Origin: Malacoraja senta
Lineage: Eukaryota
Direction of reading: 5' to 3'
NCBI GenBank assembly: GCA_038087875.1
Contig: JAXLNO010005073.1
Span: 124,001 to 188,000, forward strand
Length of the DNA stretch: 64,000 bases
The notes beneath the pieces are model-generated. The model was not told the DNA's origin. It searched no databases and saw only the letters and a program-made list of their open reading frames with translations. Positions 7,513 through 57,135 of the stretch are shown here, piece after piece (position 1 is the stretch's first letter; each line of letters begins with the position of its first letter). The position numbers and the translations under genes are program-made.

Positions 7513-7554
7513 TGCTGATTTCCCACCTCAATGCCACATTTCCCTTTTATCCTG

Positions 7555-19775: not shown

Positions 19776-19850
19776 GTAATCCACAAAATGAGGCCCAGGT
19801 TTTTCTGCAGCAGTTTGCCAGCTGGTTTGATGTTTGGTGTATTTGTTTTT
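19776..19850 (+). pseudogene. Second, truncated copy of the leader exon (MRPRFFCSSLPAGLMFGVFVF...)
   Basis: Acceptor and exon align with 28931-29035. The sequence is cut by an LTR-like insertion before the donor. Confidence 0.7.
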
Positions 19851-28520: not shown

Positions 28521-29012
28521 TCCTAGTCAATCTAAATTGAATACTTTTTTCCCGTTTCGCCGACAACGTCCTGGGACCGTTTGAGAATATTGAATGTCCC
28601 TTGCCATTCTGTTGCCTTCTCTGTTCATTGACTCACTAGCGAGGTCTGATTTAGTTGAGAATATTTTACCGAGTGGTAGGAGGTAATTGAGTCAAACATT
28701 AAAAAGGCGGAGTTCAGATGAATGATTTGGGACAAGGCAAACCGATAGCGGTTGAATATGGTGGTGAAATCCCAGATTACTGAAGTGACAATATTCTAGC
28801 GGCAGAGTCCACCAAGCGAATGTATTTTCCCCGTGTAATTGTGTGCGGCCAATTCTAAAGTGCCCCGGGGTCAGGAGTTTCAAACTGGCTGTACTCAATA
28901 CAACATTTGCCAACTACCAATTTACTGATCCTTAGTCTAAAACTGCACCTTATTTCCAAACAGAGAATGCACAAAATGAGGCCGAGGTTTCTCTGCAGCA
29001 GTTTGCCACTTG

Positions 29013-29058
29013 ATGTTCGGTTTCTTTGTTTTCCTGCTTCGACCTGTTTCCACACAGA
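29013..29058 (+). CDS. Leader exon coding part, MFGFFVFLLRPVSTQ (exon 28964-29058)
   Basis: Acceptor tatttccaaacAG at 28963 and donor GA|GTAAGT at 29059. The ATG at 29013 gives a hydrophobic 15-mer in phase 1 with Ig exon 1. Upstream ATGs at 28967 and 28976 are out of frame. Confidence 0.65.
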
Positions 29059-29157
29059 GTAAGTGCTTTCTCTTCGCTGGTCACAACCACCTTGCATTAA
29101 TTATCATTGTCCGTGTAAACCCGCACACATTGTCAATCTCGCTTTACTCTCCACGTC

Positions 29158-29690
29158 CATGAATGTGCTGCTGCCTCCCAAATCCACACCATCCTTCCTG
29201 GACCTCCATTCCACATCCCTGTATGTGTTGCTGCCTCACAAATCCACACCATCCTTCCTGGACCTCCATTCCACATCCCTGTATGTGTTGCTGCCTCATA
29301 AATCCACGCCATCCTTCCTGGACCTCCATTCCACATCCCTGTATGTGTTGCTGCCTCACAAATCCACGCCATCCTTGCTGGACCTCCATTCCACATCCCT
29401 GAATGTGCTGCTGCCTCACAAACCCACACCATCCTTCCTGGACCTCCATTCCACATCCCTGTATGTGTTGCTGCCTCACAAATCCACGCCATCCTTGCTG
29501 GACCTCCATTCCACATCCCTGAATGTGTTGCTGCCTCATAAATCCACGCCATCCTTCATGGACCTCCATTCCACATCCCTGTATGTGTTGCTGCCTCACA
29601 AACCCACACCTTCCTTCCTGGACCTCCATTCCACATCCCTGAATGTGCTGCCGCCTCACAAATCCACGCCATCCTTGCTGGACCTCCATT
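29158..29690. repeat. 60-bp minisatellite, ~9 copies, intronic
   Basis: Unit gtatgtgttgctgcctcacaaatccacaccatccttcctggacctccattccacatccct. Confidence 0.96.
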
Positions 29691-29900
29691 TCTGAGCCCA
29701 TCCCATCAACTCCCTCTCCTTCTCCTGCACCGACACGGTCCTTATCAAAGTCAGAAATGGGCTCCTGTGAGCTTGTTGCAGAGTTAAACTCTCCCTCCTC
29801 ATCCCGCTCAGCCTCTGCAGCCTTTGACACGGTTGTCCACACCATCCTTCCCAACATATCCTCACCACAGTCCAGGTGGGTGGAACTGCCCTCGACTTAT
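29690..29900 (+). mobile_element. Old L2-like RT fragment
   Basis: SAAFDTVVHTIL resembles the L2/CR1 LSAAFDTVDH motif. Confidence 0.5.
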
Positions 29901-30256
29901 CGATCCAGTCGCAGCCCGAGAACCACGCACAATGTCTTCACTTCACGCTCCCACAAAGTTCCTTGAAAACCAGGTGGAGTTCCTCCACTACCCCAACACA
30001 ACCCCCTATCCCCACCTACGTCTCCCTCCCTCCCACTCACTCACTTCTCTCATGTGATGAAATATCCCTGCATCAATCAGGCCAGGTTATTCCAGACGAC
30101 ATCTCTACACAAACCGTGTCTTCCTCGCTGGGGTTTCCAAGGAAGATCACAACTGTCTGGAATTAAATTCAGTTCAAAATTAATGATTACAGATATGGGG
30201 TGGATGGGGAAAATGTGTTTTAAATATTAATTCTTCATTGTTCGTATTCGCAACAG

Positions 30257-30598
30257 CAAATAGAAATCGAATGTATTTCTTGGATAATGGAGGCGACATT
30301 GTGTTCAACGGACAGGACAATGCTGAGAAAGACACTGTTGTTGCCTGGGAATGGAAACCACACTCAGGGAAGGAAATCGGAAAATTGTCGACTTTTAGAA
30401 GAACGGGGCGCGATTGGATCAAAGTGAAGGCCGCTGGCGAGAGTAAAGTGGACTTGTACCCGGAGATGAAAGTGTATTCCCGTACCCTTGATCTGACAAT
30501 TGATAAACCCACATTTAAATGGGCGGGAATTTTCACTTTGGCTCAAACAGAACCGAGAAAGCAAATCCTGAAACAATATGAAATATTTGGGATGAAAG
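30257..30598 (+). CDS. Ig domain 1, V-like, no canonical cysteines
   Basis: caacAG acceptor, AG|GTGAGT donor, 342 nt. Has the C-strand WEW, E-strand LDLTI and F-strand AGIFTL, and is homologous to domain 5. Confidence 0.85.
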
Positions 30599-31189
30599 GT
30601 GAGTGGGAGCGATAAGGATCAATAATGTTTAATTTATCTCTGTAAATATTGTCACCTATAATGATGAGAGATGGCGGGAATTGTGAGACTTCTTCCACCC
30701 GGTGAAAAGTTAAAAAACTGGGGAAGTGTTTTTGTTCATTGATTCTGTAATGATCAGCAGGGGTGATAATAGTTTGATGACTTCACTGGGAACAGCAAAT
30801 CAATGAATCGACCCGCAGCGAATACCATGGTCTTCTTGCCTGCACACGGTAAGGTGATCGCGGCAAGGTGGTATGGAACCAATGTCTCCATGCAGTGGCC
30901 CCGGGGTGACACTGCTACTTAATGTTACCCTGTGACCAGGTGGATGGAAGTCCATCGCCTGTGGAACATGGGCTCTGCCATAGAGTTCACCTCTTGAGAG
31001 CAATCAGATACACCTAGGAGTGGAAATAGATGCATTTTCAACAGTTTGTGAATATTTGAAACAGAGCATGTGTAAATACAACAACACCTGAATGTTGCCG
31101 GTTCCACCTGCAGTCACACGGTAAACAGCCGGCATTTCGCTGCGTCAATGTGAGCAGCCACGGGTGTCAGGGTTCTGAGAGCACTTGGG

Positions 31190-33115
31190 GAGAAGTTGTT
31201 CTGACTTTCAGCTACGTGTCAGCTTTAAGCCCGGTTATTGGATGAACCATGACATCCGCACTCTTCTGAAGTCCAGATTCCGGGCATTCAGGTCTGGGGA
31301 TGCAGTGGTCTACAAGAAGTTCAGATACGACCTTGGTAAGGCCATCAAAAGTCCAAAAGGGACTTCTGCTCCAAGCTGGAGGATGAGACGGATGTTCGGC
31401 AACTATCTTAGGGCTTGAATGCCATCACCTCCTATAAAGGCAAATTCAGGATGTAGCTCAAATGTCAGCGAAACATCACTCCCTGACGAGCTCAATGCGT
31501 TCTATGCACGCTTTGATAGGGAGAACACCGATGTGCCTTCCCGAGCCCCCATTCGCTGTGATGGTATTTCAGTCTCAGTCACAGAGGCCGACGTCAGGAA
31601 ATCCTTCAGAGGGGTGAACCCTCGATAAGCACCTGGACCTGATGGTATACCTGGTCGTGTTCTAAAAACCTGTGCGGACCAACTGGCTGGAGTTTTTACG
31701 GACATTTTCAACCTCTCACTTCTGAGGTCTGAGGTTCCCACCTGCTTTAAAAGGGCATCAATTATACCAGTGCCCAAGAAGAGTAAGGTGATGTGTCTCA
31801 ATGACTATCGACCTGTGGCACTAACACCTGTGGTGATGAAGTGCTTTGAAAGGTTGATCATGGCGCAAATCAACTCCTACCTCGACAAAAACCTGGACCC
31901 ACTGCCGTTCGCTTACCGCCACAACAGATCAACGGTGGATGCGATCTCGCTGGCCCTCCACTCTGCTCTGGACCACTTGGACAACAAAAACTCATATGTC
32001 AGGCTGTTATTCATTGATTACAGCTCGGCATTTAATACAATCATCCCCTCCAAGCTGGTTACCAAACTCTCAGATCTGGGTCTCTGTGCATCCCTCTGCA
32101 ATTGGATCCTCGACTTCCTCATTCACAGACCATAGTCTGTTCGTATTGGTGGAAATGTGTCAGCCTCGATAACAATCAGCACGGGAGTACCTCAAGACTG
32201 CGTGCTCAGTCCCCTGCTGTACTCACTCTAGCGTAGCCGGACATAGTGCGAACTCCATCATCCAGTTCGCTGACGACACCACTGTTGTGGGACAAATCAC
32301 TGATGGAGACGAGTCAGAGTATAGAAGAGAGATCGAGCAACTGTCCATATGGTGCCAGCACAATAACCTGGCCCTCAACACCAGCAAAACCAAGGAATTG
32401 ATTGTGGACTTTGGAAGGGGTAGGATGGGGACCCACATTCCCGTTTATATCAACGGGTCGATGGTGGAAAGGGTCAAGAGCTTCAAATTCCTGGACGTGC
32501 ATATTTCCGAAGATCACTCCTGGTCCCAGAACACTGATGCAATTATAAAGCAAGTACATCAGCGCCTCTACTTCATGAGCAGATTACGGAGAGTCGGTTT
32601 GTCAAGGAGGACTCTCTCTAACTACTACAGGTGCACAGTAGAGAGCATGATGACCGGTTGCATCGTGGCTTGGTTCGGCAACTTGAGTGTCCAGGAGCGG
32701 AAAAAGCTACAAAAAGTAGTAAACACTGCCCAGTCCATCATCGGCTCTGACCTCCCTTCCATCGAGGAGATCTATCGCAGTCGCTGCCTCAAAAAGGCTG
32801 GCAGCATCATCAAGGACCCACAACATCCTGGCCACACACTCATCTCCCCGCTACCTTCAGGTAAAAGGTACAGGACCCTGAAATCTGCAACATCCAGGTT
32901 CAGGAACAGCTGCTTCCCCACAGCCATCTGGTTATTAAACACAACTTCAAACAAACTCTGAACTATAACAGCCTATTGCACTTTATCTGTTTATTTATGT
33001 GTGCATATATGTATATATATTCTATGGTACATGGACACACTGATCTGTTCTGTATTTATGCCTTCAATATTCTGTTGTGCTGCAACAAGCAAGAATGTCA
33101 TTGTCCCATCTGGGA
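31190..33115 (+). mobile_element. Rex1/Babar-type LINE, broken RT, intronic
   Basis: ORFs 31770-32135 ([29 protein letters not shown]) and 32287-32961, with QFADD just upstream of the latter. Confidence 0.9.
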
Positions 33116-33170
33116 CTTGACCTGTACAAACCACTACTCACTCTGAATCTCATTGATCTGTTTTTCACAG

Positions 33171-33440
33171 TTGAGGCAAGTCCACAGAGGCCTCTGCTGG
33201 GCAGTGACGTCACACTCAGCTGCACCATCTCCAGACTCTCAGATACAGTCAGTCTTCACTGGAGACCCATGGACTCATCCCAGCAGAACAGGAGCAACAC
33301 TGATCAGATCCGCCTGGATAACACGGTCTATCTGATGGTTCAACACGTTACAGTGGGGGATGGGAAGCTGTATGTGTGTGATGTGCAGGAAAACGGAAAC
33401 ATTGTTCACACAAGTAATGGAGATTTTACTGTAGAGAACG
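33171..33440 (+). CDS. Ig domain 2, C2-type
   Basis: tttttcacAG acceptor, G|GTGAGT donor, 270 nt. Motifs VTLSC, LHW and LYVC. Confidence 0.92.
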
Positions 33441-34495
33441 GTGAGTGTAAACACCTCCCATTGGATATCAAGTAGACACTTGTATCACGGTGCTTCTTGT
33501 AATATTATGTGTGTGCCCTGTGAAGAACTGTGGCAGTGACCAACTGCTCTCTAGTATAAAATGCTGCAATGATCAGGGAGAAGTTTACAGAAAGTCTCTC
33601 TCTCTGTGGAGCAGCTGCCTGCTTGTCTCTGTGTGACAGACACACAGCACAGGAGGGGGATGTCTTTCTGTAACCATTCTTCTGTCAAGTATTTTGTCAG
33701 TTTATCTTGCCATCAATGCTCCAGTATCTGAGACTGAGATACTGATACAGGACTCATGTCAAAGTGTCAGATAGAAAGTGTAGTCACCATGACAACCACC
33801 AGCACTTGCTGCTCACACTCACACTGGGGGTCCCGGCCCACACATCAGCACTGAACAACAATCCATCCCCTCTCCCCTCACTGACCCTTCTCTCCGAGTC
33901 TGGTGTTGCTTGAAGTGATTCCAGCTGCTGCAGACTCTGGCTTCGGATCAGCATTCAGCTGGGAGCAGGACCCGGGAACAGGGAAGGACAGGGAATCAAT
34001 GGGTGTGAATGGGAGAGGGATGGTGGGAATTATGGGAATGAAGGGACGGGAAGACCCGACCCACTTGAAGTGCCAACCTGTCCGGGTCAGTCCCCACGCA
34101 GGCATCCTCTGGGCTGCTTCTGTCCGCAGCCTGAACCTGCACCACCTCCTGCAGACAGACTGACAGAGACATTCACCTCCCAGACCGCTCTCGGGAGTCT
34201 CCGGGAGGTTTCATTCCATCCCGGGAGATTCCCGGACAGTCCGGGTGTGGGGGCGAACCGAATGTTGAAATGTAGAGTGGAATATCCAAACTTCACTGCA
34301 ATTTACTGCCGTACAGGACATTGTATTTTATAAAGATCTGATGAGTTTAGTGCGGCATTCATGAAAGATGTTACATTTGAAACTTAATCAGCTGAACAAA
34401 ACACCACGAATGTTTATAAGAATACGGTTGAGAATCTCTGTATGGCACGGTAACTGTAATACTGAAAGGAGTTATCCTCTGTCTCTCTGATACAG

Positions 34496-34837
34496 ATTTA
34501 TATAGGGAGAGATACACACTTTACCGCTCCAGCACAGATCACAGTGAACTTCACCTGGTTTGTTCTGTGAGTTATGGTGATAGCTATTCCCGTGCTGAGT
34601 GGACCTGGACACCTCATCACCTTCATCAACACAAAGTAATAGCATCTGCAAACCGTTCTCAGCCCATCAATGTCAAAGGGACCGACTTCAGGAATCGACT
34701 GGTGACCTCAGGGAAACCCTTCGATGGCGAGGATTTCAGTGTGAGGATTGTCCCCGTTTTGTTTCAAGATGCCGGAGTTTACGCATGTTTTCTGGAATCA
34801 TATCCATTTCTCACCATTGATCTAATCACAGTGAAAG
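34496..34837 (+). CDS. Ig domain 3, V-type
   Basis: tgatacAG acceptor, AG|GTAGGA donor, 342 nt. Motifs LHLVC, WTW, FSVRI and DAGVYAC. Confidence 0.93.
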
Positions 34838-34915
34838 GTAGGAGACAGAATGTTGCCACTGAGTTTACTGATGAACTTATTGTTTAAAATGTAAACAACC
34901 TGCTTGTTTCCACAG

Positions 34916-35176
34916 TCACAGCTGAACCGTCTGATGCAGTGACTGAGGGAGACACCGTTACCCTGACCTGCTCTGTGTCTCACGTCATTGGGTCAATGAG
35001 ACTGGTTTGGATCAATGGCGATGGCAAAAGTGTTGGAGAAAAGACACTGACTGTGGAAGAGAAATCACAGAGTCTGGTTATTCAGAAAGCTGAGAGAGGC
35101 AGAGGGAACTGGAGATGTGGTTTGTTTCATCAAGACCTGCCCCGGCTTTTTGTCCCGTACTATCAGGAGCCCCGTG
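34916..35176 (+). CDS. Ig domain 4, C2-type with WxC F-strand
   Basis: tttccacAG acceptor, G|GTAAGT donor, 261 nt. Motifs VTLTC, LVW and GNWRC. Confidence 0.93.
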
Positions 35177-36186
35177 GTAAGTGATAAGGGTTTGTTCTTC
35201 ATACTTAGAGTCATGATTGAGTTTTGATGTCGCTTATTGATCCTGAAATTTGAGTGGAATATTTTCTTCCAGTTTGAGTAGTCTAACTGTTATGATCAAT
35301 GAATTCTCAAATTTCAAATAACACTTCCCGAACCCCACTTATCCCCCCCCCCCTTCATTGTGCACGCATTTATCCCACCACCCAGTTATCCTATTCTCTT
35401 CCCTTCCTCTTTCAACTCATCTCCCACCCCTTCCAATTGCAGAGTTTTCCTTTTATGTTCTTGCTCCACTTCCACCCATATCCCTCCCTCTGTTACTGAT
35501 CTGACTGTAGATCAGTCAGTATTAGTTGACCTGATCTATGTCATGTTTTACTGCATGCCGCTGTGTACTCAAACAGTCATCATATTATCTGGTCTGTTAG
35601 TCCAGCCTCTAGTTAGATTCGTTGCTGAGCTTGAGCTTACAACACCTAAGTATTTGAGCTCTGTGTGTTTACTATAACAAACAACTTCTTCTTATGTATG
35701 GATCCTGTTATTACACATGTTTACACTGACAACCTTTTGTCTCCATTTCACCCCTCCATTTTGTCATTATCTCCATCCATCTACTCATCACCATTCCCCA
35801 CCTGTATCCACCTATCACTCACCATGCTTTGTCTCGTGCCTACTTCCCTTCCCCAGTTGTCACTCTCCCATTCCATCAGTCTGAGAATGCATCCTGACAT
35901 GAAACGTCATCAATCCATTCCCTCCACAGATGCTGCCTGACCCATTGAGTTTCTCCAACACTTTGCGTTTGATCAACATTCCACAATCTGCAGTTTCTTG
36001 TGTCTCCATGGAGACCCACTGGTCAACGTGGACAGATTGCTGCAGAGGGCCTGTTTCCCTGCTGTTCCATGATGATGAATTATAACGTACAACTTAGTAA
36101 AGATTAATTCTCTGCAATATTGCTACTGACAAGGTCAGTGAAAAATTATTGTCCAACATTTACACATTTGTTCTCTTTTCCTACAG

Positions 36187-36531
36187 GAAGTGGACATTAT
36201 ATGTACTTTTTCCATCAGGAAGGCAACTTTGTATTGAAAGGACCAGACAGTCCTGGAAATGGCCCCATTGACTTGGAATGGAGGCCACACTCAGGGCAAC
36301 AAACCACAAAGCGATTGGCCACTTTCCACAGAGAAGATCAGCAGTGGGACGTACAATGGAGTGATGAGTACATTCAAATACCAGGCATTTCCCAGAGGAT
36401 GCATGCGGACTGGGGTACCCTTAATCTGAGGATCAGGATGCCCACATTCAAACTTGCAGGACTGTTCACCTGGACTCAAACAGAGTCCGCTGGGAAAATC
36501 CTGAGACAGTGGGAACTATTTGGGATCAAAG
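36187..36531 (+). CDS. Ig domain 5, V-like, no canonical cysteines
   Basis: ttttcctacAG acceptor, AG|GTAATA donor, 345 nt. Motifs LEW, LNLRI and AGLFTW; paralog of domain 1 (shared W[K/R]PHSG and TF). Confidence 0.9.
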
Positions 36532-37142
36532 GTAATAGAGTCATAGTGTCACACAGCACTGAAACAGGCCCTTTGGCCCAATTCATCCATACTGACCAAC
36601 TACCCATCTAAACATCCCATTTGCCCTCATTTGGCCCATATCCCTTCAACCTTTTTTACATCTACCTGTTTAAATGCCCTTTAAATGCTGTACCTGCATC
36701 AAACACTTCCTCTGCTCGATCTTTCCATAAAGTATGTTTAGGTACCACACTCTTTGTCAAAACTGCCCCTAATATTAAGGGGTATATCAAATCTGCCCCT
36801 CTCACCTTAAACATGTACTAACTAGTTGTTGATTCCCCAACCCTGGACAAAAGACCATGTGCGTTTACTATAGATATGCCTCTCATGATTTTATTCACTC
36901 CCATATAATCTCTGTTAAAGACATCCAAGAAATATAATGTCTGAAGAAGGGTCTCAACCTGAAACGTCACCTATCCATGTTCTCTAGAGTTCAAAGGTCT
37001 TTTATTGTCACGTGTACCAATTAAGGGGCAGTGATATTCATATTACCAGACCTGCTGAATTACTCCTGCACTTTATGTCCTTTTATATATTAACCAGCAT
37101 CTGCAGTTCTGTGTTTCTACTATACTAAAAACATCCCTACCT

Positions 37143-37470
37143 GGAAGTGTTGATGTGGGAGACGAGGGGGCGAGGGGGACAGGTGGTCACTACCAGGAAG
37201 TGTTGATGTGGGAGACGAGGGGGCGAGGGGACAGGTGGTCACTACCAGGAAGTGTTGATGTGGTAGACGAGGGGGTGAGGGGGACAGGTGGTCACTACCA
37301 GGAAGTGTTGATGTGCGAGACGAGGGGGCGAGGGGGACAGGTGGTCACGACCAGGAAGTGTTGATGTGGGAGACGAGGGGGCGAGGGGGACAGATGGTCA
37401 CTACCTGGAAGTATTGATGTGGGAGACGAGGGGGCGAGGGGGACAGATGGTCACTACCAGGAAGTGTTGA
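37143..37470. repeat. ~53-bp minisatellite, ~6 copies, intronic
   Basis: Unit ggaagtgttgatgtgggagacgagggggcgagggggacaggtggtcactacca. Confidence 0.93.
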
Positions 37471-37594
37471 AGACATCACTGAGCACGGTAGCTCAACATT
37501 CAGCCGACTGTCTGTCTGCAGGAAAAAGACAATTCTGCCCACAGTAGTTCAGAAAGCTGTTGGTGAACTGAACCACATGTGTCTGTTTCCACAG

Positions 37595-37867
37595 TTGAGG
37601 CCGACTCACCGAGGCCAGTGATGGGCAGTGACATCACCCTCAGCTGTACCATCTCCAGACTCTCAGATACCATCAGTGTTCACTGGAAACCAAGAGGCTC
37701 ATCTCAGCAGAACAGGAGGAGCAACACTGATCAAATCCATCTGAATAACGCCGTCTATCTGATGATCCAACATGTTGGAGCAGGAAATCCCAATCTGTAC
37801 ACATGGGAAGTGCAGGAAAATACCTCCATTGTTCTCACTGGAGACTCCAATGTCGAAGTGGATCAGG
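37595..37867 (+). CDS. Ig domain 6, C2-type, second Cys replaced by Trp
   Basis: tttccacAG acceptor, G|GTGAGT donor, 273 nt. ITLSCTISRLSDT is near-identical to domain 2; the F-strand reads LYTW. Confidence 0.92.
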
Positions 37868-38189
37868 GTGAGTCCAAAGCTGCCTTGCAGCAGGTATTAA
37901 ATAGATCTTGATATCAAACTGTTCCACATGTTGTATAGTGAGCACTGACTCCACCCGTGGGCTTCCACACTGCAGGATGTGGACATTGCCTTTACCCTGG
38001 GACATGGTGTAAATATAAAATGGTGGCACTAAGATTGATGGAGCAACACAGGAGAACCAAGGGATTCATTTCAGTTCACCTGTATGAATCAAAGAGAATA
38101 ATATCCAGTGATGGAAATAACATCTAGTTTTCAGTGTATAACAGAACAGGAAAATATGAACTAATTCAAGTATAAATGCAGTGGAAATA

Positions 38190-38870
38190 TCAGAATCAGA
38201 ATCACATTTTATTGGCCACGTAATAATACACAGGGAATTTGACAGTGCTTTGCTCGCATAAGGTAAAAACACGATATACAACAGACAATTAAAAATAAAA
38301 CATTATAATTTAAACATGTGAAAATAAAGTACCGGAGTAAAAAGAGGCTACCGACTTTTGGCTGTTGAGTAGAGCTACGGCTCGTGGGAAGAAGTTGTTT
38401 TTATGTCTGGCTGTGGCTGCTTTGACAATCAGGACTCACCTGCCAGAGGGAAGTGATTCAAAGAGTTTGTGGCCTGGGTGAGAGGGGTCAGAGATGATCT
38501 TGCCCGCTCACTTCCTGGCCCTTGCAGTGTACAGTTCATCAATGGAGGGAATGTTGCAGCCAATAACCTTCTCTGCTGATCGGACGATTCGCTGCAGCCT
38601 CCAGGTATCGTGCTTGGTGGCTGAGCCAAACCAGACCATGATGGAGAAGGTGAGGACAGACTCTATGATGGTAGTGTAAAACTGGACCATCATTGCCTGT
38701 GGCAGGTTGTGTTTCCTCAGCTGCCGCGGGAAGTACATCCTCTGTTGGGACTTTTTGACTGTGGAGTCGATGGTGGCCTCCCAATTAAGGTTGCTGGAGA
38801 TGATGATTCCGAAGAAATTAAATGACTCCACAGTTGTGACTGTGGTGTTGTTGAAGGTGAGTGGGGGAGG
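38190..38870 (-). mobile_element. Rex1/Babar-type LINE 3' fragment
   Basis: ORF 38508-38831 has QQRMYF.RQLRK...IESVLTFSIMVWFG. Confidence 0.8.
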
Positions 38871-39009
38871 GGAGGGGGAGCTCTACAATCAGGAGGGGAG
38901 GATTGAGTCTACAATCAATTCCACTGTCTATAGAGCACTGAGCTTCAGGTTGTTACGATGTCAACAGGACACCAGCTTTATGATTAGGGTGACTTGGACA
39001 TCGTGCTGA

Positions 39010-39410
39010 AGTAAGCATGCAGGTACAGCAGGCAATGGAGAAAGCAAATGGCATGTTGGCCTTCATAGCGAGATGATTTGAGTATAGGAGCAAAGAGATC
39101 CTACTGCAGTTGTACGGGGCCCTGGTGAGACCACACCTGGAGTATTGTGTGCAGTTTTGGTCTCCTAGTTTGAGAAAGGACATTCTTGCTATCGAGGGAG
39201 TGCAGCATAGGTTCACCAGGTTAATTCCTGGAATGGCGGACTGACATATTATGAAAGAATGGATCGACTGGGTATATATTCACTGAAATTTAGAAGGATG
39301 AGAAGGGATCTTATAGAAACGTATAAAATGATTAAGGGATTGGGCAGGCTAGATGCAGGAAAAATGTTCCCCATGTTGGGCGAGTCCAGAACCAGGGGTC
39401 CCAGCTGACA
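39010..39410 (+). mobile_element. CR1 fragment
   Basis: caggtacagcaggca...gtgagaccacacctggagtattgtgtgcagttttgg matches the CR1 RT C-terminus. Confidence 0.85.
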
Positions 39411-39506
39411 TCCCAGAGCCGGGGGTTTGTCCCTGTGGAAACTCACAACATTGTATCTCGGCGTGTGTGGAAATCTAATTCTTTGTTCCCTGTCCCTCTC
39501 TTGCAG

Positions 39507-39845
39507 GTTTACATAACAAGACGTACACAGTTTATCGCTCAGTCACAGATGACAGTCAACTCGACCTGATTTGTGAAGCTTCTCCTGAGCTCAGTGAAAC
39601 CAAATGGACTTGGAGATCACCACGTTTCCAGAATCAAGAGAAGGAAATAGCTTCTTCTCACAGGTCTGGGCCGATACATGTCAACAGGAGCTACTTTGGG
39701 AATCGACTGGAAACCATAGAGGGAAATGTGAATGGCAAGAATTTCCATGTGAGGATTGTCCCCGTGCAGTTTGCAGATGCTGGAGTTTACACATGTTCCA
39801 CGGGATCAAATATATATGTGACCATTGACCTAATCACAGTTACAG
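39507..39845 (+). CDS. Ig domain 7, V-type (this frame is absent from the ORF track)
   Basis: ctctcttgcAG acceptor, AG|GTAGGA donor, 339 nt open frame GLHNKTYTVY...LDLIC...WTW...FHVRIVPVQFADAGVYTC...IDLITVT; paralog of domain 3. Confidence 0.92.
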
Positions 39846-40652
39846 GTAGGAGACTGGATGTTACTACTTTCAAGAATTAAGTTACTGGTGTAGAGTTTCT
39901 AATCTGAGTGCAGACTGCAATGTCAGCAGAAATTCCCAAGTTTGAAGAATTATTTTACCTCCAGAGCTTCCTCTTCAACTTATTTGTATTTTGCTGAACC
40001 CAAAATCTGCTCTAAACCAACATTATTGGGAAGCACATCAAATGTTATTTTCATTTATTTTGCTGAAAACACATTGTTTTATACATAAGAGGGGGAATAT
40101 GATGAAATGTGATTCACAAAGGTGCAAATGAGCTTCTATCGAAAATATTTAAAAATCATTCAACTTCTCTTAATACATTCCCCAAGTTTCTTTGACCCCA
40201 AACGACCCATCCTAATTTTTGAAGGCTCACTGGACGCTTAAAACTGAGTGTATTTTGTGGAATTTATCGATTAATATTTACCTGGATGAGTGTTGTGGCC
40301 AAAACTGTGGCCAGAGACAATGATGTGGGCATTGGTTGCTCTTTGTATAATTAGTTCAAAACTGTTGTGAATGATTATGGAAAAGACACTTGGAGAGGTA
40401 CATGGATGGGAAAGGTGCAGAGGGATATGGGCCAAATGTGGGAACATATTTTAGATGGAGCATCTTGGTCAGCATGGATGAGTTGGGCTGAATGGACCGA
40501 ATTGTTTCATGCTGTGTGACTATGCCTCTAACTCTTGTTGTGTAATATAATTTTCCACACTTAGAACGCCAGATACTGGTGTCAAAGTACTGAGAAAAAT
40601 ACAACACAATCCAGACAAAATTCATTGTTTTACGATTTTCTTCTTTCCACAG

Positions 40653-40922
40653 TCACAACTGAACCATCTAGCGCAGTGACTGAGGGAAGAAACATTACCT
40701 TGACCTGCTCTGTGTCTCATGTCACTGAGTCAATAAGACTGGTTTGGATCAATGATGATGGCAAAGTTGTAGAGCAGAAAAATCTCATTCAAACAAAGCA
40801 GGAGAACAATTCTTTGCAGCTGATTATTGCAATAGCTGATGGAGTAAGAAGGAAATGGACATGTGGTTTGTTTCATCAAAGCACAGCCAAGGTTTCCATT
40901 CCATATAATCTGCAGGTGAACA
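40653..40922 (+). CDS. Ig domain 8, C2-type with WxC F-strand
   Basis: ttctttccacAG acceptor, A|GTAAGT donor, 270 nt. Motifs ITLTCSVSHV, LVW and KWTC; paralog of domain 4. Confidence 0.93.
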
Positions 40923-41537
40923 GTAAGTTTCTTAGCTTCTGCTCTTCGTTATCTCGACACAGAGTTCTTGTCACGTTGCTATTCTTTTTGGATAACTTTT
41001 AACATTTCATGTCTTACTGCAAGTAGAGCTCAATCATAGACATTTCCTGCAAACCTCTTGTCCATGCCTATAAGGTCACTTCTATTGTAAGTAGTCCAGG
41101 TCTCTGAAGCACATGGGAGCACATGGATCACTACTGCTGGCAGACCACTGACCAAGTCCTATGTTGGCCATCTCATTGAAGGTGATCGGGAATTTCATCA
41201 TCAATGTCTGTCCTTGTTGATAAGGGTCTCCACAGGTATGAAAACTGGTCCAGTAGTATGAAAACTAGTGTGTCACTGTGAACCTTTTTGTCAGAGGTCA
41301 GTATAGTAAGGTGGGCAGCTTGGTGGAAGATCTTTGCCATAACACCCAAACTGTGCCCCTTAAAGATCACAAAAGTAGTGAAAATCATCTTACAAATAGT
41401 TGTACAAGTTTCTTTCCCCTGTTCTGATGCTGTAAAACATTACAGCGGTTGAAGCATCCACAGTAACTTCACCAAAGGCTGCCGTGTGAGAACAGAAGAT
41501 GTGGGGGAGGGAATACTGATGTCTTCACCTTGTCTGA

Positions 41538-41835
41538 CCATGGTGGCGCAGTGGTAGGGTTGCTGCCTTACAGCGCCAGGGACCCGGGTTCAATCCTGAC
41601 TACAGGTGCTGTCTGTATGGAGTTTGTACCTTCATCCCGTGCCCTGTGTGGGTTTTCTCGAGGATTTCCGGTTTTCTCCCAAATTCCAAAGATGAACAAG
41701 TCTGTAGGTTAATAGGCTTGGTTTAATTGTATGTTGTCCCTGGTGTGTGTAGGATAGTGTTAGTCTGTGGGAATCGCTGGTTGGTGTGGACTCGGCGAGC
41801 CGAAGGGCCTGTTTCCGCGCTGTATCTCTAAACTA
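41538..41835 (+). mobile_element. tRNA-derived SINE, HE1-like
   Basis: ggtggcgcagtggtag...gacccgggttcaatcc head; ends tctctaaactaaac. Confidence 0.85.
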
Positions 41836-42439
41836 AACACGCCATTTCCTCCCAATCCCACCCATCCATTAATCCCTGCCCTTCATGTGGCCCCAAGCCT
41901 CGGTGAAAGACATTTTGTACAATGCTGACAGAAGGCAAAGCACTGATCCCTAACAGAGGAAGATCCTGTAAACACCCAGGCACAAAGAAACAATCTCCAC
42001 CACACATAGATCAATGAAGAGTCAGTGAAGCACAGTGGAAAGTATCAATGTCCCAACAGAAACATTTTAATTCCTCACAGATAATCACATCATCCAATCA
42101 TAGAATTGTGGAATGGTTGTAGCACAGAAGGTGGCCATTTGACCCATCATATCCATGCTAACTCTCATCCAGAGCAACTCGCTAATTCTACCCCCTCTCC
42201 TTTTGCCATTACATTGCAGCTTTTTCATCACTATATATTTCTCCAATTCTCTCTGGAAAGCCACGATAGAACCCAGCTCCCCAACTGATGCAGACAGTAC
42301 ACTTCAGACTCCAACTGCCTGCTGCCTAAAAAGATTTTCCTCAAGTCATTCTAACATGTTTTCCCCTTTATTTTAAACCTATAACATTTTGTGCTCAGCC
42401 TTTCCACTGAAGGGAGCATCCTTCCACAATCCATTCTGT

Positions 42440-45320
42440 TCAGACTGAATAAATGATGCATAAATGAACAATTATGCCATTGTGCAGATAACTATTAATG
42501 ACTATGATATAGTTGGGATCACGGAGACATGGCTCCAGGGTGACCAAGGCTGGGAGCTGAACATCCGGGGATATTCAATATTCAGGAGGGATAGACAGAA
42601 AGGAAAAGGAGGTGGGGTAGCGTTGCGGGTTAGAGAGGAGATTAACACAATAGAAAGGAAGGACATTAGCTTGGAGGATGTGGAATCGATATGGGTAGAG
42701 CTGCGAAACACTAAGGGGCAGAAAACACTAGTGGGTGTTGTGTACAGGCCACCTAACAGTAGTAGTGGAGTTGGGGATGGCATCAAACAGGAAATTAGAA
42801 ATGCGTGCAACAAAATAAAACAGTTATAATGGGTGACTTCAATCTACATATAGATTGGGTGAATCAAATTGGCAGGGGTGCTGAGGAAGAGGATTTCTTG
42901 GAATGTATGCGGGATAGTTTTCTAAACCAACATGTAGAGGAACCAACGAGAGAGCAGGCTATTCTAGACTGGGTATTGAGTAATGAGGAAGGGTTAGTTA
43001 GCAGTCTTGTTGTGCGTGGCCCCTTGGGCAAGAGTGACCATAATATGGTTGAGTTCTTCATTAGGATGGAGAGTGACATTGTTAATTCAGAAACAAGGGT
43101 TCTGAACTTAAAGAAAGGTAATTTTGAGGGTATGAGACGTGAATTTGCCAAGATTGACTGGCAATTGATTCTTAAAGGGTTGACGGTGGATATGCAATGG
43201 AAGGCATTTAAAGACTGCATGGATGAACTACAAAAATTGTTCATCCCAGTTTGGCAAACGAATAAATCAGGGAAGGTAGTGCATCCGTGGATAACAAGGG
43301 AAATCAGGCATAGTATCATAACAAAAGATGAAGCGTACAACTTAGCCAGAAAAAGCAGCCTACCAGAGGACTGGGAGGAATTCAGAGTCCAGCAGAGGAG
43401 GACAAAGGGCTTAATTAGGAAAGGGAAAATAGATTATGAAAGAAAACTGGCAGGGAACATAAAAACTGACTGCAAAAGATTTTATAGATATGTGAAGAGA
43501 AAGAGATTAGTTAAAACAAATGTAGGTTCCTTGCAGTCAGAAACAGGTGAATTGATCATGGGGAACAACGACATGGCAGACCAATTGAATAACTACTTTG
43601 GTTCTGTCTTCACTGAGGAAGACATAAATAATCTGCCGGAAATAGCAGGGGACCGCGGGTCAAATGAGATAGAGGAACTGAGTGAAATCCAGGTTAGCCG
43701 GGAAGTGGTGTTAGGTAAATTGAATGGATTAAAGGCCGATAAATCCCCAGGGCCAGATAGGCTGCATCCCAGAGTACTTAAGGAAGTAGCCCCAGAAATA
43801 GTGGATGCATTAGTGATAATTTTTCAAAACTCCTTAGATTCTGGACTAGTTCCTGAGGATTGGAGGGTAGCTAATGTAACCCCCCTTTTTAAAAAGGGAG
43901 GGAGAGATAAAACGGGGAATTACAGACCAGTTAGTCTAACATCGGTAGTGGGGAAACTGCTAGAGTCAGTTATTAAAGATGGGATAGCAGCACATTTGGA
44001 AAGTGGTGAAATCATTGGACAAAGTCAGCAAGGAATTACGAAAGGTAAATCATGTCTGACGAATCTTATAGAATTTTTCGAGGATGTAACAAGTAGAGTG
44101 GATAAGGGAGAACCAGTGGATGTGTTATATGTGGACTTTCAGAAGGCTTTCGACACGGCCCCACATAAGAGATTAGTATACAAACTTAAAGCACACAGTA
44201 TTGGGGGTTCAGTATTGATGTGGATAGAGAACTGGCTGGCAAACAGGAAGCAAAGAGTAGGAGTAAACGGGTCCTTTTCAGAATGGCAGGCAGTGACTAG
44301 TGGGGTACCGCAAGGCTCAGTGTTGGGTCCCCAGCTATTTACAATATATATTAATGATTTGGACGAGGGAATTGAATGCAACATCTCCAAGTTTGCGGAT
44401 GACACGAAGCTGGGGGGCAGTGTTAGCTGTGAGGAGGATGCTAGGAGGCTGCAAGGTGATTTGCATAGGCTGGGTGAGTGGGAAAATGCATGGCAGATGC
44501 AGTATAATGTGGATAAATGTGAGGTTATCCACTTTGGTGGCAAAAACAGGAAAGTAGACTATTATCTAAATGGTGCCCGATTAGGAAAAGGGGCGATGCA
44601 ACGAGACCTGGGTGTCATGGTACACCAGTCATTGAAAGTAGGCATGCAGGTGCAGCAGGCAGTGAAGAAAGCGAATGGTATGTTAGCATTCATAGCAAAA
44701 GGATTTGAGTATAGGAGCAGGAAGGTTCTACTGCAGTTGTACAGGGTCTTGGTGAGACCACACCTGGAGTATTGCGTACAGTTTTGGTCTCCAAATCTGA
44801 GGAAAGACATTCTTGCCATAGAGGGAGTACACAGGTACACCAGATTGATTCCTGGGATGTCAGGACTTTCATATGAAGAAAGACTGGATAGACTCGGCTT
44901 GTACTCGCTAGAATTTAGAAGATTGAGGGGGGTTCTTGTAGAAACTTACACAATTCTTAAGGGATTGGACAGGCTAGATGCAGGAAGATTGTTCCCGAGG
45001 TTGGGGAAGTCCAGGACAAGAGGTCACAGTTTAAGGATTAAGGGGAAATCCTTTAGGACCGAGATGAGAAAAACATTTTTCACACGGAGAGTGGTGATTC
45101 TCTGGAACTCTCTGCCACAGAAGGTAGTTGAGGCCAGTTCATTGCCTATATTTAAGAGGGAGTTAGATGTGGCCCTTGTGGCTAAAGGGATCAGGGGGTA
45201 TGGAGAGAAGGCAGGTACAGGATACTGAGTTGGATGATCAGCCATGATCATATTGATTGGCGGTGCAGGCTCGAAGGGCCGAATGGCCTACTCCTGCACC
45301 TATTTTCTATGTTTCTATGA
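42440..45320 (+). mobile_element. CR1 LINE ORF2 (APE + RT), 5'-truncated, one frameshift near 42820, inside the last ectodomain intron
   Basis: ORFs 42464-42829 (GITETWL, VGVVYRPP) and 42805-45228 (GDFN, DHN, KFADD); (ctatgttt)n tail. Confidence 0.96.
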
Positions 45321-45444
45321 TGTGATGAAAGAGCATTATTGACTCTTGTCTTCAAACTCTCTCTTCAGTGTGCCATGGTAATAACTGGACAGAGAACAGC
45401 CATTAAAAGAATCTCAATTATACCAGCCATATTTACTGTTTAGT

Positions 45445-45750
45445 TTAGAGATACAGCGCGGAAACAGGCCCTTCGGCCCACCGGGTCCACGCCAACCAGC
45501 GATCCCCGCATAATAACACTATCCTACACCCACTAGGGACAATTTTTACGTTTACTATGCCAATTAACCTACAAACATGTACCTCTTTGGAGTGTGGAAG
45601 GAAACAGAGGATCTCTGAGAAAACCCATGCAGGTCCCGGGGAGAAAGTACAAACTCCGTACTGACAGCACCCGTAGTCGGGATCGAGCCCGGGTCTCCGG
45701 CGCTGCATTCACTGTAAGGCAGCAACTCTACCGCTGCGCCACCGTGCCGC
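45445..45750 (-). mobile_element. tRNA-derived SINE, HE1-like
   Basis: The reverse complement begins gcggcacggtggcgcagcggtagagttgctgcc. Confidence 0.88.
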
Positions 45751-47402
45751 ATTCATTGTGTCATCTCTTTGTGACATGTTTACAGTTTGACTTGCCGATT
45801 CAACTGCTTCAATGCACCATCTGATGTGATTATTTGACTGAACACAGCAACCTGCTCCCTGATGGTCACTGTGTGCTTCAGGTTGGTGTTATTAATCCTT
45901 ACTCCTGGCGAGCAGCAGTCTCCCCCTGGGAGAGGACAACAGGGCTCTGACTATAGTCGGCTGAGAGTCCACTGAGGAATGAAGGCTTTGGTTGTCCTCT
46001 GCCTGTGCCTCAGTGCCAGTAAAACCCTGCTCCGTCAGCCGCTGCACCAAGGGAGAGGCCACCCCAACCCACACCGACTCCCACTGTGGTGTCCTCACCT
46101 CCCAGATTGGAAATCTGTGCTCCCGGCTGAGCAGAAGCCTCCCCATGTACGCTCATCTAGCACAGTCTCACTATGGAGCAGAACTGAAGTTGAACTTTAT
46201 TTTACAAGGGTCGCGCACACCAGCCTCTCCATCCTTTGGCCTCATTGCAGACTGATGCTTTTGGGTGTTGAGCTGTCCTTAGAGGGCAGGAGATATCAAT
46301 CAGTGAGTGAATAGATTAGTTGGTGTGTGGAATTAATGCATGGATCAACCATCACCAATTTTACACTAAAAACACATGAAGATGTGCTCATTAGGATTGC
46401 AATAATAATGTGTTCAACCTCATTGACATCAGTAGGCAATGGTTACATGCACAATACAGTTTTAGTACTTGAAGACCAAAATTAATTTTAGGAGTTGAAA
46501 ATCGGAATTAAAAATAATAATAATAATCAGCAGGACAGATAGGAACTGTGAAAGAGGAACAAGTCCAGCCATGATCGCATTAAATGACGGTGCTGGCTCG
46601 AGGGGCTGAATGGCCTACTCCTGCACCTATTGTCTATTGGCAAAGATCCTTTCTTTGAATCTGACAATGTTTTATTCATCATAAAACATGAACTCACTTC
46701 TTTCCCTTTCCACGGATACTGCTCAAACGGCTGAGTATTTGTAACGTTTACAGTTCTTGTGCTCCTGGTTAGAGAGGATTGAAGCTGGAGGGCAATATCC
46801 ACTCTGTTGTCAGCAGTGTTCATTCAACCATTGTTCCAGGCTTAGACTTTGATAGACATTTGTCCACTGTACAGTGGGAAGTGTCACAGCTGAATCAGCT
46901 ACTTTATCAACCAACCATCAGCTCCCATCTCCTGCCTGAGAAATGTCAGCTGATTGTAACCAAGAAATAGAAACTTGTGTGAATGTTTACAGTCTCTAAC
47001 TGATGGCTACTGAGGCAAGTTGTGGCTCTCTGATCTTTGTGAGTAAGGTTAATTAATCTGGGGGAAAAAAGACACAATGTGCTGGAGTAACTCAACGGGT
47101 CAGGCGGAATCTCTGGAGAACATGGATAGGTGAGGTTTTGGATCTTGACCCTACTTCAGACTAAAGGGCTGCGACCCGAAATATCACCTGCCTAACCTGC
47201 TGAGTTTCTCCAACACTTTGTGTCTTTTATTGGTAAACTCTCATCTGCAGTACCTTGTGTCTCAGTGAATCTGGATCACAAGTTAAACTCAAGACTTCTG
47301 ATCTAAATTAGTCAGTGTGGTTAATGCCTGGTCTTTGGGGGAGCTTTTGAATGATGTCCATTTATTCTACAAATGCGAACTCTGTGTTTATTATTTTGAC
47401 AG

Positions 47403-47510
47403 GGAATTATACTCTTATATACATCATTGTTGGAATTATCGGGAGTCTGGCTGTTCTCATCGTCATTATACTGGCAGTGGTGTGGTGTCAAAGAAAGCGC
47501 AAGCCTACAG
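47403..47510 (+). CDS. Transmembrane exon with basic stop-transfer segment
   Basis: attttgacAG acceptor, phase 1. Encodes NYTLIYIIVGIIGSLAVLIVIILAVVWCQRKRKPT and ends at a candidate donor AG|GTAAAG. Confidence 0.88.
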
Positions 47511-49217
47511 GTAAAGTACATGAAGACATCCTTAATGCAGCACAGATTCCCCAAATTATCAATGACAATGTTATCATTGTTACAAGGAGAAAAGAACAAT
47601 ATATTTTGGATAAGAAAAGTATCTGTTTGTGCATATGTTGTTGAGAAATTGATTTCAGACTTTTTGTGTTCAATTAAAGCATTATTTATGCAATGTGGAT
47701 TGTCTACCTACCTGCGTTGCCATGAGGAGTCTGCTGTATGATTTCAGGTGCTGTTCTGCAATGATCTGACCACGTGGTGATTGTGGCACCATCCCCTGTG
47801 TAAACCATTATCAAATAAACATGCCAGAAGATGAAGTATAGCTAGTGTAGTCATGTAGAAAATATGGTCTCCAATTTGCCCTCAACATGTTCCTATTTAC
47901 TGAGGGATGAAGATTGGCCAGGAAACCAGGAGACCAAGGTATCTCCACTGCACTTTGGTGATTCACGTTCCAAAATCTATTGTGTCCCAAGAGGCCAGAA
48001 GGGGCCTCAGTTAAACAAATAATCTTTAATCTGGTGAGGCCAATGCTCCAACAATCCCACATGGCAACAGAGTGTTAGGCTCAACTGTGTGTTCAAATTT
48101 GGGGTTGTGCCTGCGGGTTTATTCTGTGTTGTTGAACAAACTGATCAGACGGGTATCGGGCTAGTACAACAGTTCATCAAGGTCACTGACACATGGAATA
48201 CTCAATTCTTAAAGCTTCCCTTATATTTATATAAATCAACATTTTTTTCCCATTAAAAAAATAAACCATTCCAATAACTGATCATTAGAAATATAAAATT
48301 ACACGTTGAATATATTAACTGTGTGTACAATTATAAATTCAGTTGCTCCTTTACTTGTCATCTTGACTGGTGAAAACTCTGCAGTGCAAAGATGCATTTG
48401 TCCACTCTCCAGATATTTTCAACTCTGCTAGATACCTCCACATGTTGGCCTTACCTCATTCATGGTCTCCTGTGCCTTCCCACCCATGTTCTGTCCAGCA
48501 ATGGCTCTATTGTGGAATCCATACCGTAACTCAAATCCATGCTCATCCTGTACCTCATATTCTCCATCACCATCTTCTTGGGCATCCTGTCCATGTAACA
48601 CATGATCTATCCATGTAATTTGACTTCTGTCACCCATTCCCATCATTGCACCACCATTTTATTCACAATATTTTTCCTGAACTGAATCCGAATTCTCAGA
48701 TTATCAAATAGGATTTAAACCTGTGCTTCTGGACTATTAATCTCAAAGAGTCTTGGATTAATATCCAGTTAACCTATGACAATCCAAAAGTACATCAAAG
48801 TAAGCAAACTAAATAATGTACCCATTAACAGGAGTCAGCACAACACATTTGAAAGTAAGTTGGAGAGAAACACATCACCAATTCTAAATCTGGTAATGTT
48901 GGGAAAAGTTAATTACATATTGTGTTTATCATATTTGTGGAAAACGGAGTTAATGGAATCTCTATTGTGTTTTGTTCAATGTGTGAAATTAAATTGTATG
49001 TAAAATCATGAGGGGAATAGATAGGGTGAGTGTGCAGAGTCTTTGACCCAGTATAAAGTAATCAAAAACTAGAAGACATAGGTTTAAGTTGAGAGGAACC
49101 TGAGTGGCAGCTTTTTCACTCAGATGATGTTGGTTATATGGAACAAGCTGACAGAGAAGGTCAATGAGGAAGGAACTATAACTGCATTTAAAAGACACTT
49201 AGGTAGGTACATGAACC

Positions 49218-50218: not shown

Positions 50219-50243
50219 TTGGAGAAGAAAGGTTAAGGTCATG

Positions 50244-50470
50244 GTGTAGCGCCGCCTGATGGGGCACGTAGATATCGAACCCGGCGTTGGGAAGCCGCGG
50301 TCACGTGACTCGGGAGGGGCTGCTGTTTTCGTGCGGTTTCGTTTTGGCGCCACAGTTGTTTTGCTGACCACCGTTGTGATCAGACGTGTATGCAGAGACC
50401 TCTTTGCTAAGGAGCGAGTGTTCAATAAAAACCGTTCAGAAAACATAGTCGTCGTTTCTGCATCCGCTAA
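50244..50470 (+). mobile_element. Possible short solo LTR
   Basis: Starts TGTAGCG, CpG-rich, internal AATAAA, inserted in an older repeat; the 3' CA is not clean. Confidence 0.3.
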
Positions 50471-50731
50471 AATGGGTGAATTGCAGGCACATGGGACAAG
50501 CTTGGATGGGGCAACTTGGATGGTATAGACTAGTTGAGCCAAAGGAGATGGTTCTGTGCTGTATGACTCTATGACTCTTTGACTTTATAAAAGGGTGAAA
50601 ACAATTTAAATTGTGCCCTCTCTCTGAACAGGTTTGGGCAATCAAAGACAGACAGCTCCACCATCAAAAAGAAACACAGAAAGTGAATCTCAACTTTAAG
50701 GCAACCTTGAAGAAATTCAGCAGAAGGCAGG

Positions 50732-53700: not shown

Positions 53701-54013
53701 TTTTTAAATGTTTATTAGTAATTGCCTCATTAGATACTCGGAACAATTAGGAGCCGGTATGTAGTGGCCATTTGGACTGTTATGCATGTCACTGATGATG
53801 GCATGTGCCTTTAAATTTTAGACTGCCCGTTGTATTGTGGGTGGGATTTATGACGTGTTTTTAGGCGTGTTTGGAGCTTAGATGCTTGCGCAGAAGTCTA
53901 GTTTTTAGATTAGTTTGGAGAGACGATGGAGAAGGTCAATCCTTCGACCATGTCAATGTTACGGAGACACGAGGAGTTTTGTAATGTTTAAAGTTGCAAG
54001 TTGGAATTGAAGG
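50732..54013 (+). mobile_element. BEL/Pao LTR retrotransposon, internally deleted (5' LTR 50732-51215; 3' LTR from 53760, cut at 54013)
   Basis: [38 protein letters not shown] (RT); LHHFSD and KARVAP..IPRMEL (RNase H); GGRL..HPI (integrase N-terminus); direct LTRs TG...CA. Confidence 0.92.
53570..53644 (+). pseudogene. Degenerate tRNA-Asp(GUC) copy followed by CCA, inside the BEL element
   Basis: 72 nt colinear with vertebrate tRNA-Asp (TCCTCGTTAGTAT...CTGTCAC...GGTTC...ACGAGGAG). Acceptor stem is perfect; anticodon and T stems are mismatched. Confidence 0.85.
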
Positions 54014-57000: not shown

Positions 57001-57135
57001 CACAGATGGTAGTTGAGGCCAGTTCATTGGCTATATTTAAGAGGGAGTTAGATGTGGCCCTTGTGGCTAAAGGGATCAGGGGGTATGGAGAGAAGGCAGG
57101 TATGGGATACTGAGTTGGATGATCAGCCATGATCA
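54014..57135 (+). mobile_element. CR1 LINE with near-complete ORF2 (54177-57113, single in-frame TAA at 54648-54650), inserted in the BEL 3' LTR
   Basis: ORFs 54177-54650 and 54711-57113 are in the same frame, with APE and RT motifs. Confidence 0.96.

Follow-up and report, generated by a model that had tools for sequence, protein, structure and literature searches.

An eight-domain CD4/LAG-3-like receptor gene copy with damage at both ends in Malacoraja senta

CD4 and LAG-3 are regarded as a family of two, with few additional members and an unclear origin. Sharks have separate true CD4 (CxH tail) and LAG-3 ((F/Y)xxL(D/E) tail) genes; the family is marked by WxC in both C2 domains, V-C rods, and tail motifs, and both shark genes contain one exon per immunoglobulin (Ig) domain and no intron within D1 (PMC10768021). 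Another described four-Ig-domain type I membrane protein is the teleost G6f-like collagen receptor of thrombocytes, whose tail contains YxN and an ITAM (immunoreceptor tyrosine-based activation motif; PMC3528668). Here, we analyze a receptor gene on the forward strand of a 64,000-nucleotide stretch of Malacoraja senta DNA (GCA_038087875.1, contig JAXLNO010005073.1, positions 124,001 to 188,000; hereafter, the window, whose coordinates are used throughout). The gene encodes eight Ig-like domains (D1–D8) and a transmembrane (TM) segment (Table 1). It is one copy of a large, unnamed fish Ig-superfamily receptor family rather than a lone gene, and it is CD4/LAG-3-like yet neither CD4 nor LAG-3. 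The present analysis adds an account of how this copy is damaged, the family's composition as paired receptors, the age of its internal duplication, and a separate structural test of D1–D2.

The eight-domain gene and its family

The forward strand of the window contains eight stop-free Ig-like exons plus one TM exon, all with an AG acceptor, a GT donor, and phase 1 throughout; a pyrimidine tract precedes the acceptors of the Ig exons. The joined exons give 865 open codons, from ATG 29013 to 47510. D5–D8 are a repeat of D1–D4, i.e., the ectodomain is a doubled four-domain cassette, each copy of which runs V-like, C, V, C2. Pfam searches identified V-set domains in D3 and D7, generic Ig plus C1-set in D2 and D6, and generic Ig in D4 and D8 (with a weak C1-set match on D8 alone); there was no Pfam match in D1 or D5, both of which are without either cysteine.

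The joined model aligned end to end, without gaps at the junctions, to eight-domain proteins from both rays and sharks, including one of Pristis pectinata (P0055; 68% identity over residues 1–865) and one of Mobula birostris (59%). The closest annotated proteins are P0084 (83%) and P0076 (75%) of Leucoraja erinacea. When contigs of public RNA-like runs were placed on positions 33150–39000, the exons were covered and the unique intron sequence was uncovered. Spliced contigs showed three joints: 33439>34496 (D2-D3), 35176>36187 (D4-D5, GT..AG), and 36531>37595 (D5-D6, GT..AG). The joint-carrying contigs are 93–95% identical to the window (5–7% different), and therefore record splicing in a paralogue or a related species rather than in this copy. 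We conclude that the architecture of eight domains is genuine and is transcribed within the family. Two separate four-domain genes are ruled out by the spliced D4>D5 contigs and the full-length eight-domain homologues. Eight Ig exons and a TM exon, spliced in phase 1 into one open frame, had been the core of the original prediction, and this is confirmed by the exon borders, the end-to-end homologues, and the joints of relatives; RNA junctions, which it had proposed as a check, were seen for three exon pairs, in relatives or paralogues and not in this copy.

The original prediction had also suggested that the gene may be undescribed. It is not a lone gene and belongs to a large family whose members are already predicted by NCBI, nearly all of them labelled ‘uncharacterized’ and a few carrying automatic names (CD276 homolog, VCAM1-like, obscurin-like, and CEACAM5-like). 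A profile of D1 plus D5 found just 35 matches among 1.84 billion representative proteins, and word-indexed searches found 59 proteins, most of them with eight domains, along with 107 matches to the cassette. The family is represented in sharks, rays, skates, Callorhinchus, sturgeon, paddlefish, Polypterus, and Anguilla, with one to four cassettes per protein, each composed of a V-like domain that lacks cysteines, then a C domain, a V domain, and a WxC-bearing C2 domain. There are dozens of family loci per species, many of them on the same contigs. When a sturgeon member and the cassette profile served as queries in word-indexed searches, a method blind to very distant relatives, only family members and no named CD4, LAG-3, or G6f were returned. 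No eight-domain or ‘obscurin-like’ shark receptor was found in the literature, and the family was found neither in the shark CD4/LAG-3 paper (PMC10768021) nor in a shark single-cell atlas.

In a maximum-likelihood tree, the second cassettes formed one clade (support 100/97), and the first cassettes, all but one row, formed another (97/95). Both cassette clades contain sharks and rays; therefore, the duplication from four to eight domains predates the shark/ray split. Three shark members (P0001, P0049, and P0051) contain three or four cassettes (1404–1720 aa, 12–16 Ig domains), and these may be either real transcripts or neighbouring genes fused by annotation.

A motif scan of members of at least 400 aa identified 63 with tails that contain ITIMs (immunoreceptor tyrosine-based inhibitory motifs), 14 whose tail is short and whose TM segment carries a charged residue (mostly a GYLLVKL-type lysine), and a few short-tailed members without TM charge. 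ITIM-tailed members beside TM-lysine members are the pattern of paired inhibitory and activating receptors, and the intact ITIM-tailed relatives would be expected to signal inhibition. Homologue tails start with a conserved L-Y-S/A-N, read as YSNVxE or YANPDK and followed by ITIMs; the scan found no ITAM in the homologues. The YxN at the start of the tail resembles that of the G6f-like protein, a likeness by description only, whereas the G6f-like protein has an ITAM and the family has ITIMs or a TM lysine. Fast-evolving, probably tandem multigene clusters with frequent truncated copies and pseudogenes, and ITIM-tailed members beside short-tailed ones with a basic TM residue, are shared with KIR/LILR, SIRP, and teleost NITR/LITR; the family differs from these in its CD4/LAG-3-like cassette, which is not of their C2 or V types, and in the number of cassettes (1–4).

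Lesions at the two ends of the gene

Damage at both ends of the gene was not recognised in the original prediction. Homologues start with MHKMRPRFLCSSLP(A/I)GLMFGFFVFLLRPVSTQ. In the window, the leader encodes MHKMRPRFLCSSLP in one frame (MHKM..., from ATG 28967) and LMFGFFVFLLRPVSTQ in another. Compared to a Rhinoraja longicauda locus (L001) that is 92% identical across the leader exon, the window is short of 5 nt after 29007 (TTGCCA-----CTTGATG vs. TTGCCAGCTGGTTTGATG). Because of this 5-nt deletion, the conserved initiator ATG 28967 is out of frame and its reading ends in phase 2 at the exon end, which rules it out as the start. The internal ATG 29013 (MFGFFVFLLRPVSTQ plus 1 nt) is the sole ATG in frame with D1, and the upstream ATGs at 28967 and 28976, each with an A at -3, open an out-of-frame reading. 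The predicted frame of ~865 codons is thus open from the internal ATG and not from the conserved initiator, which lies beside the start claimed for it at 28964. About 9 kb upstream, a 39-nt stretch (19782–19820) shares 95% identity with a segment of the leader exon (28969–29007) and may be the leader-exon relic of a lost copy.

At the 3′ end, the gene had been predicted to end near 47820, which was not borne out. The TM-exon donor at 47510 is strong, and homologues show no read-through of the TM exon: their sequence (...CQRKRKATG/LGNQRQ...) runs on into a phase-1 exon that corresponds to 50632–50733 in the window. In this tail exon, a TAA occupies the codon that is TAT in Rhinoraja and that encodes the Tyr of L-Y-S/A-N in all relatives. 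The spliced product would have a 29-residue tail without tyrosine, with the stop 36 nt before the end of the tail exon. Placed before any tyrosine, the stop leaves this copy without an ITIM ([SIVL]xYxx[IVL]). Collinearity between the window and a second Rhinoraja locus (L002) holds from D4 to 50733 (83–89% identity, including introns) and not beyond, with homology breaking a few bases past the tail-exon donor. Locus L002 contains three more tail exons, encoding EYMSV, IHYGSISF, and IIYAQI, none of which had a match in the window up to 64000, and searches with five homologue tails at loose thresholds found no ITIM exons over the same range. A retroelement starts at the tail-exon donor instead, in which 254-bp direct repeats (50732–50985 and 53760–54013, 96.5% identical) bracket a Pao-type pol fragment (51320–52195); the repeats are candidate long terminal repeats whose ends are not clean TG...CA. 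The TM and juxtamembrane segments of this copy match those of the ITIM-tailed Rhinoraja protein P0093.

Reading through the TM-exon donor (47511–47644) would yield a tail of 44 codons, whose KSICLCICC end resembles the CD4-type CxC. This tail is ruled out as a CD4-like feature, given that homologues splice from 47510 to 50632, and the part of L002 with which the read-through region is collinear contains no coding exon of P0093.

Sequence constraint was assessed by comparison with L002. From D4 to the tail, the exons differ by 0.126 synonymous (dS) and 0.097 nonsynonymous (dN) substitutions per site (dN/dS 0.78), and exon identity (~90%) is barely higher than intron identity. Relative to a transcribed relative, 29 of the 35 listed exon differences are nonsynonymous and six are synonymous. 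Such values are compatible with rapid evolution of an immune receptor as well as with relaxed constraint, and they lend little weight to the original suggestion that the frame is under selection. Words of the tail exon were present in no RNA-like run and only in two unlabelled, probably genomic runs from a single study.

Based on these lesions, we consider it moderately likely that this copy is a young pseudogene or a signalling-dead remnant. It would have originated as a tandem-cluster copy from the unnamed paired-receptor family with the CD4/LAG-3-like cassette, after an ancient internal duplication of the four-domain cassette produced the eight-domain form. Its uncharged TM segment points to descent from the inhibitory branch, whose tail has a YxN motif and ITIMs. 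Three putative inactivating events would have followed in this copy: the 5-nt deletion that puts the signal peptide out of frame with the conserved start codon, the change of Tyr to a stop in the first tail exon, and the retroelement at the tail-exon donor, the window having yielded no ITIM exons. At best, the gene would encode a membrane protein that starts at the internal Met, is poorly translated, and is unable to signal.

Several observations weigh against loss of function. Neither stops nor frameshifts interrupt the roughly 2.5 kb made up by the eight Ig exons plus the TM exon, and the splice sites are intact, although fully neutral drift since the Rhinoraja split would, by a rough estimate, be expected to produce several stops; this speaks for an ectodomain that stayed intact until recently. 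Internal Met 29013 retains the hydrophobic core of the signal peptide, and contigs from RNA-like runs that are 100% identical to the window exist, for the D4 exon only. In addition, the uncharged short-tailed members of the family suggest that a tail-less form may be tolerated or used. Taken at face value, these data would describe a functional tail-less decoy or adhesion receptor that starts at Met 29013, has eight domains and the 29-residue tail, and competes for the ligand of inhibitory relatives without signalling. Good splice sites in an intact 865-codon frame, annotated short-tailed homologues, and a stop close enough to the exon end (36 nt) that the transcript could, by the usual rule, escape nonsense-mediated decay are consistent with such a receptor. 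It is, however, rather unlikely: the out-of-frame ATGs at 28967 and 28976 would capture scanning ribosomes, the retroelement replaces the natural downstream intron of the tail exon, dN/dS is 0.78, and the tail exon is in no RNA-like run. If this copy is a young pseudogene or signalling-dead remnant, it represents a snapshot of birth-and-death turnover, illustrating cluster turnover by duplication, tail loss, retroelement insertion, and start-codon loss, and showing that an open multi-exon frame is no proof of a working gene.

Relation to CD4 and LAG-3

The cassette was modelled with AlphaFold2 (AF2) using Leucoraja P0084 residues 35–429 and 46 aligned family rows (pLDDT 89.8), and D1–D2 alone was modelled separately (pLDDT 92.1); the models are predictions on a close Leucoraja homologue, not on this copy. 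When the cassette model was compared to PDB with Foldseek, LAG-3 (2.7e-18, 4.4e-17) and CD4 (9e-17 to 2.3e-15) filled the top seven ranks, followed by an scFv-Fab (4e-15). In the Swiss-Prot AFDB, the top 17 matches were all LAG-3 or CD4 (1e-20 to 3e-17), followed by Ly-9 and IGSF2/3/8. VIA-align of the cassette Foldseek matches gave Z 16–17 for CD4; rat CD4 D3-D4 superposed on the D3-D4 part of the model with Z 15.9 (2.5 Å, 169 residues), LAG-3 D3-4 had Z 13.7, and CD4 D1D2 fitted both halves at 3.3–4.0 Å. For the D1–D2 model, Foldseek ranked LAG-3 D1-D2 first in PDB (TM-score 0.5), and exhaustive VIA-align against 48,161 chains ranked rat CD4 D3-D4 first (Z 15.7, 2.7 Å, 168/177 residues), with other two-domain proteins worse or matched on one domain only. 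Sequence identity in the structural alignments was 12–18%. In the AF2 models, strands 93–108 and 296–312 span the V-C borders, forming predicted rigid V+C rods in which V strand G runs into C strand A. The cassette is therefore predicted to fold as two rigid rods, like CD4 and LAG-3.

At the sequence level, a D3-D4 profile searched against PDB matched LAG-3 best (5.9e-13) and CD4 at 5e-7; the alignment to LAG-3 starts in the E-F region of the V domain, continues through all of C2, and aligns WtC with WGC. This gene is neither CD4 nor LAG-3, and two defining features are absent, namely the tail motif and a WxC in each of the two C domains. WxC is present in D4 (NWRC) and D8 (KWTC), vs. LYVC in D2 and LYTW in D6, and D2 and D6 score as C1-set despite the domain order. 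The Cx(C/H) of CD4 is absent from the spliced tail, and the would-be YGNLE, compared to the (F/Y)xxL(D/E) of LAG-3, has a stop in place of Tyr. Of the features that bear on the CD4/LAG-3 traits named in the original prediction, the doubled cassette, the cysteine-less V-like D1 and D5, and WxC in D4 and D8 are present, and WxC in D2 and D6 is not.

LAG-3 shares with the family a four-domain cassette of V-C rods and is the best structural match for both the cassette and D1–D2 (Foldseek PDB), as well as the best PDB profile match for D3-D4 including the WxC F strand. One exon encodes each Ig domain in shark LAG-3, D1 here is likewise without an internal intron, and intact family relatives have an inhibitory-type tail. 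On the other hand, there are eight domains here, each cassette has WxC in just one of its C domains, and no disulfide is present in the first V domain. The family tail is encoded by multiple exons with YxN and ITIMs, whereas the LAG-3 tail is single-exon with (F/Y)xxL(D/E), and the family is multigenic with activating-type members, this copy being without a working tail. With CD4, the family shares the fit of rat CD4 D3-D4 to both cassette halves (Z 15.7–15.9, root-mean-square deviation 2.5–2.7 Å, ~168 residues), V-like domains without a disulfide (D1 and D5, as in CD4 D3), and a continuous V-to-C strand in the model. It differs in that the family gene is without the Cx(C/H) LCK motif, and the disulfide-less V domain is first in the cassette, compared to third in CD4.

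Given these features, the cassette probably shares ancestry with CD4 and LAG-3, although this link comes mainly from predicted structure, with sequence support for D3-D4 only. Other results also count against it: CEA ranked first and LAG-3 second with the whole-cassette profile; the D1–D2 profile gave no CD4 or LAG-3, with light-chain constant domains among the best matches of D2 and D6; and PDB sequence searches with the D1 exon and a 24-member D1-type profile gave no significant match. There was also no match to CD4-specific Pfam models. Together with the C1-set score of D2, the WxC in one C domain per cassette, the conserved YxN at the tail start as in G6f-like (PMC3528668), and the position of Ly-9 and IGSF2/3/8 close behind CD4 in the fold search, these results would suit a family that is not specifically kin to CD4/LAG-3, being either a convergent V-C rod of generic Ig-superfamily domains or the equivalent, in cartilaginous fishes, of a different four-domain lineage (G6f-like, SLAM/CD2, or CEACAM, for example). 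We regard this as doubtful, since LAG-3 or CD4 held every top rank in four independent structure searches with the cassette and D1–D2, both two-domain halves superposed rigidly (2.5–3.9 Å) where other two-domain proteins did not, and the LAG-3 profile match extends through the end of C2 including WxC, with one exon per domain as in shark CD4 and LAG-3. A true skate CD4 or LAG-3 orthologue with extra domains is extremely improbable and already contradicted. The fold matches, the fit of the would-be Y-G-N-L-E to (F/Y)xxL(D/E), and the CLCICC end of the read-through could be cited for it, but sharks have separate single CD4 and LAG-3 genes identified by tails and location (PMC10768021), there are dozens of family loci per species, the homologue motif is YSNVxE or YANPDK rather than YxxL(D/E), and CLCICC lies in an intron that homologues splice out. 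The proposal that the gene is a CD4/LAG-3 relative thus stands on the fold matches and the D3-D4 profile and finds no signal in D1–D2 or the CD4 Pfam models, with shark CD4 and LAG-3 being separate genes.

More tentatively, the family may be a third ancient CD4/LAG-3 branch that became a fast-evolving paired multigene system (ITIM or TM-lysine, 1–4 cassettes) in cartilaginous and basal ray-finned fishes. If so, CD4/LAG-3 modules would form the basis of an innate receptor system resembling KIR/LILR, which may recognise major histocompatibility complex (MHC) class II or related ligands. The same rod-like cassette in a large, old, unnamed family, ranging from chimaeras to sturgeons and eels, would provide an outgroup for the origin of the MHC class II co-receptor fold and add a paired-receptor system to shark and ray immunity.

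Features of the window

Table 1 Coordinates of the receptor exons and the adjoining retroelement in the window
Feature	Position	Strand	Description
Leader exon	28967..29058	+	Donor AGA/GTAAGT, phase 1 counted from 29013
D1	30257..30598	+	V-like, without cysteine pair, no Pfam match; family-defining domain
D2	33171..33440	+	Constant-type Ig, B-F cysteine pair, YxC (LYVC), C1-set-like score
D3	34496..34837	+	V-set, canonical disulfide
D4	34916..35176	+	C2-type, strand F WxC (NWRC)
D5	36187..36531	+	D1 duplicate, 39% aa identity, cysteine-less
D6	37595..37867	+	D2 duplicate, 65% aa identity; F-strand Cys to Trp (LYTWEV)
D7	39507..39845	+	D3 duplicate, 50% aa identity, V-set
D8	40653..40922	+	D4 duplicate, 55% aa identity, WxC (KWTC)
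TM exon	47403..47510	+	Uncharged TM, inhibitory type, then WCQRKRKPT; donor CAG/GTAAAG
First cytoplasmic exon	50632..50733	+	GLGNQRQTAPPSKRNTESESQL, stop, GNLEEIQQKAG; TAA 50697-50699 at conserved Tyr site
Retroelement	50735..54013		Starts at tail-exon donor; direct repeats around Pao-type pol fragment

No further paralogue Ig exons were found in the 64-kb window, and besides the receptor gene and transposable elements, no gene turned up in the open reading frames of 1–9000 and 28000–49000 or in homologue searches of the whole window. Positions 1–8898 recur at 55488–64000 as a collinear segmental duplication (89–99% identity, period ~55.5 kb), which consists mostly of long interspersed nuclear element (LINE) and other repeat sequences. 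This duplication is consistent with receptor genes arrayed in tandem. Within the duplicated block, 150 consecutive N (57981–58130) mark an assembly gap or a mask.

The introns are rich in transposable elements, as had been predicted, with LINE reverse-transcriptase fragments and satellite arrays. The D8-TM intron contains a LINE (42464–45228) with a long open frame of 807 codons (42805–45228) that encodes endonuclease and reverse-transcriptase domains. A partial copy at 54363–55486 is 95% identical to it, related copies are located at 1–1648 and 55488–57135, and the element looks young. Directly after the leader exon, the first intron contains a 60-nt tandem repeat (29150–29690; 9 copies, 92% match), which is the cause of spurious long open reading frames on both strands. 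Two large C-rich satellite arrays are located at 14386–16698 and 12394–13179; one has a unit of 34 nt in 68 copies (92% match) and the other a unit of 26 nt in 30 copies (96% match). The strong negative GC skew at 12–18 kb is due to these two arrays.

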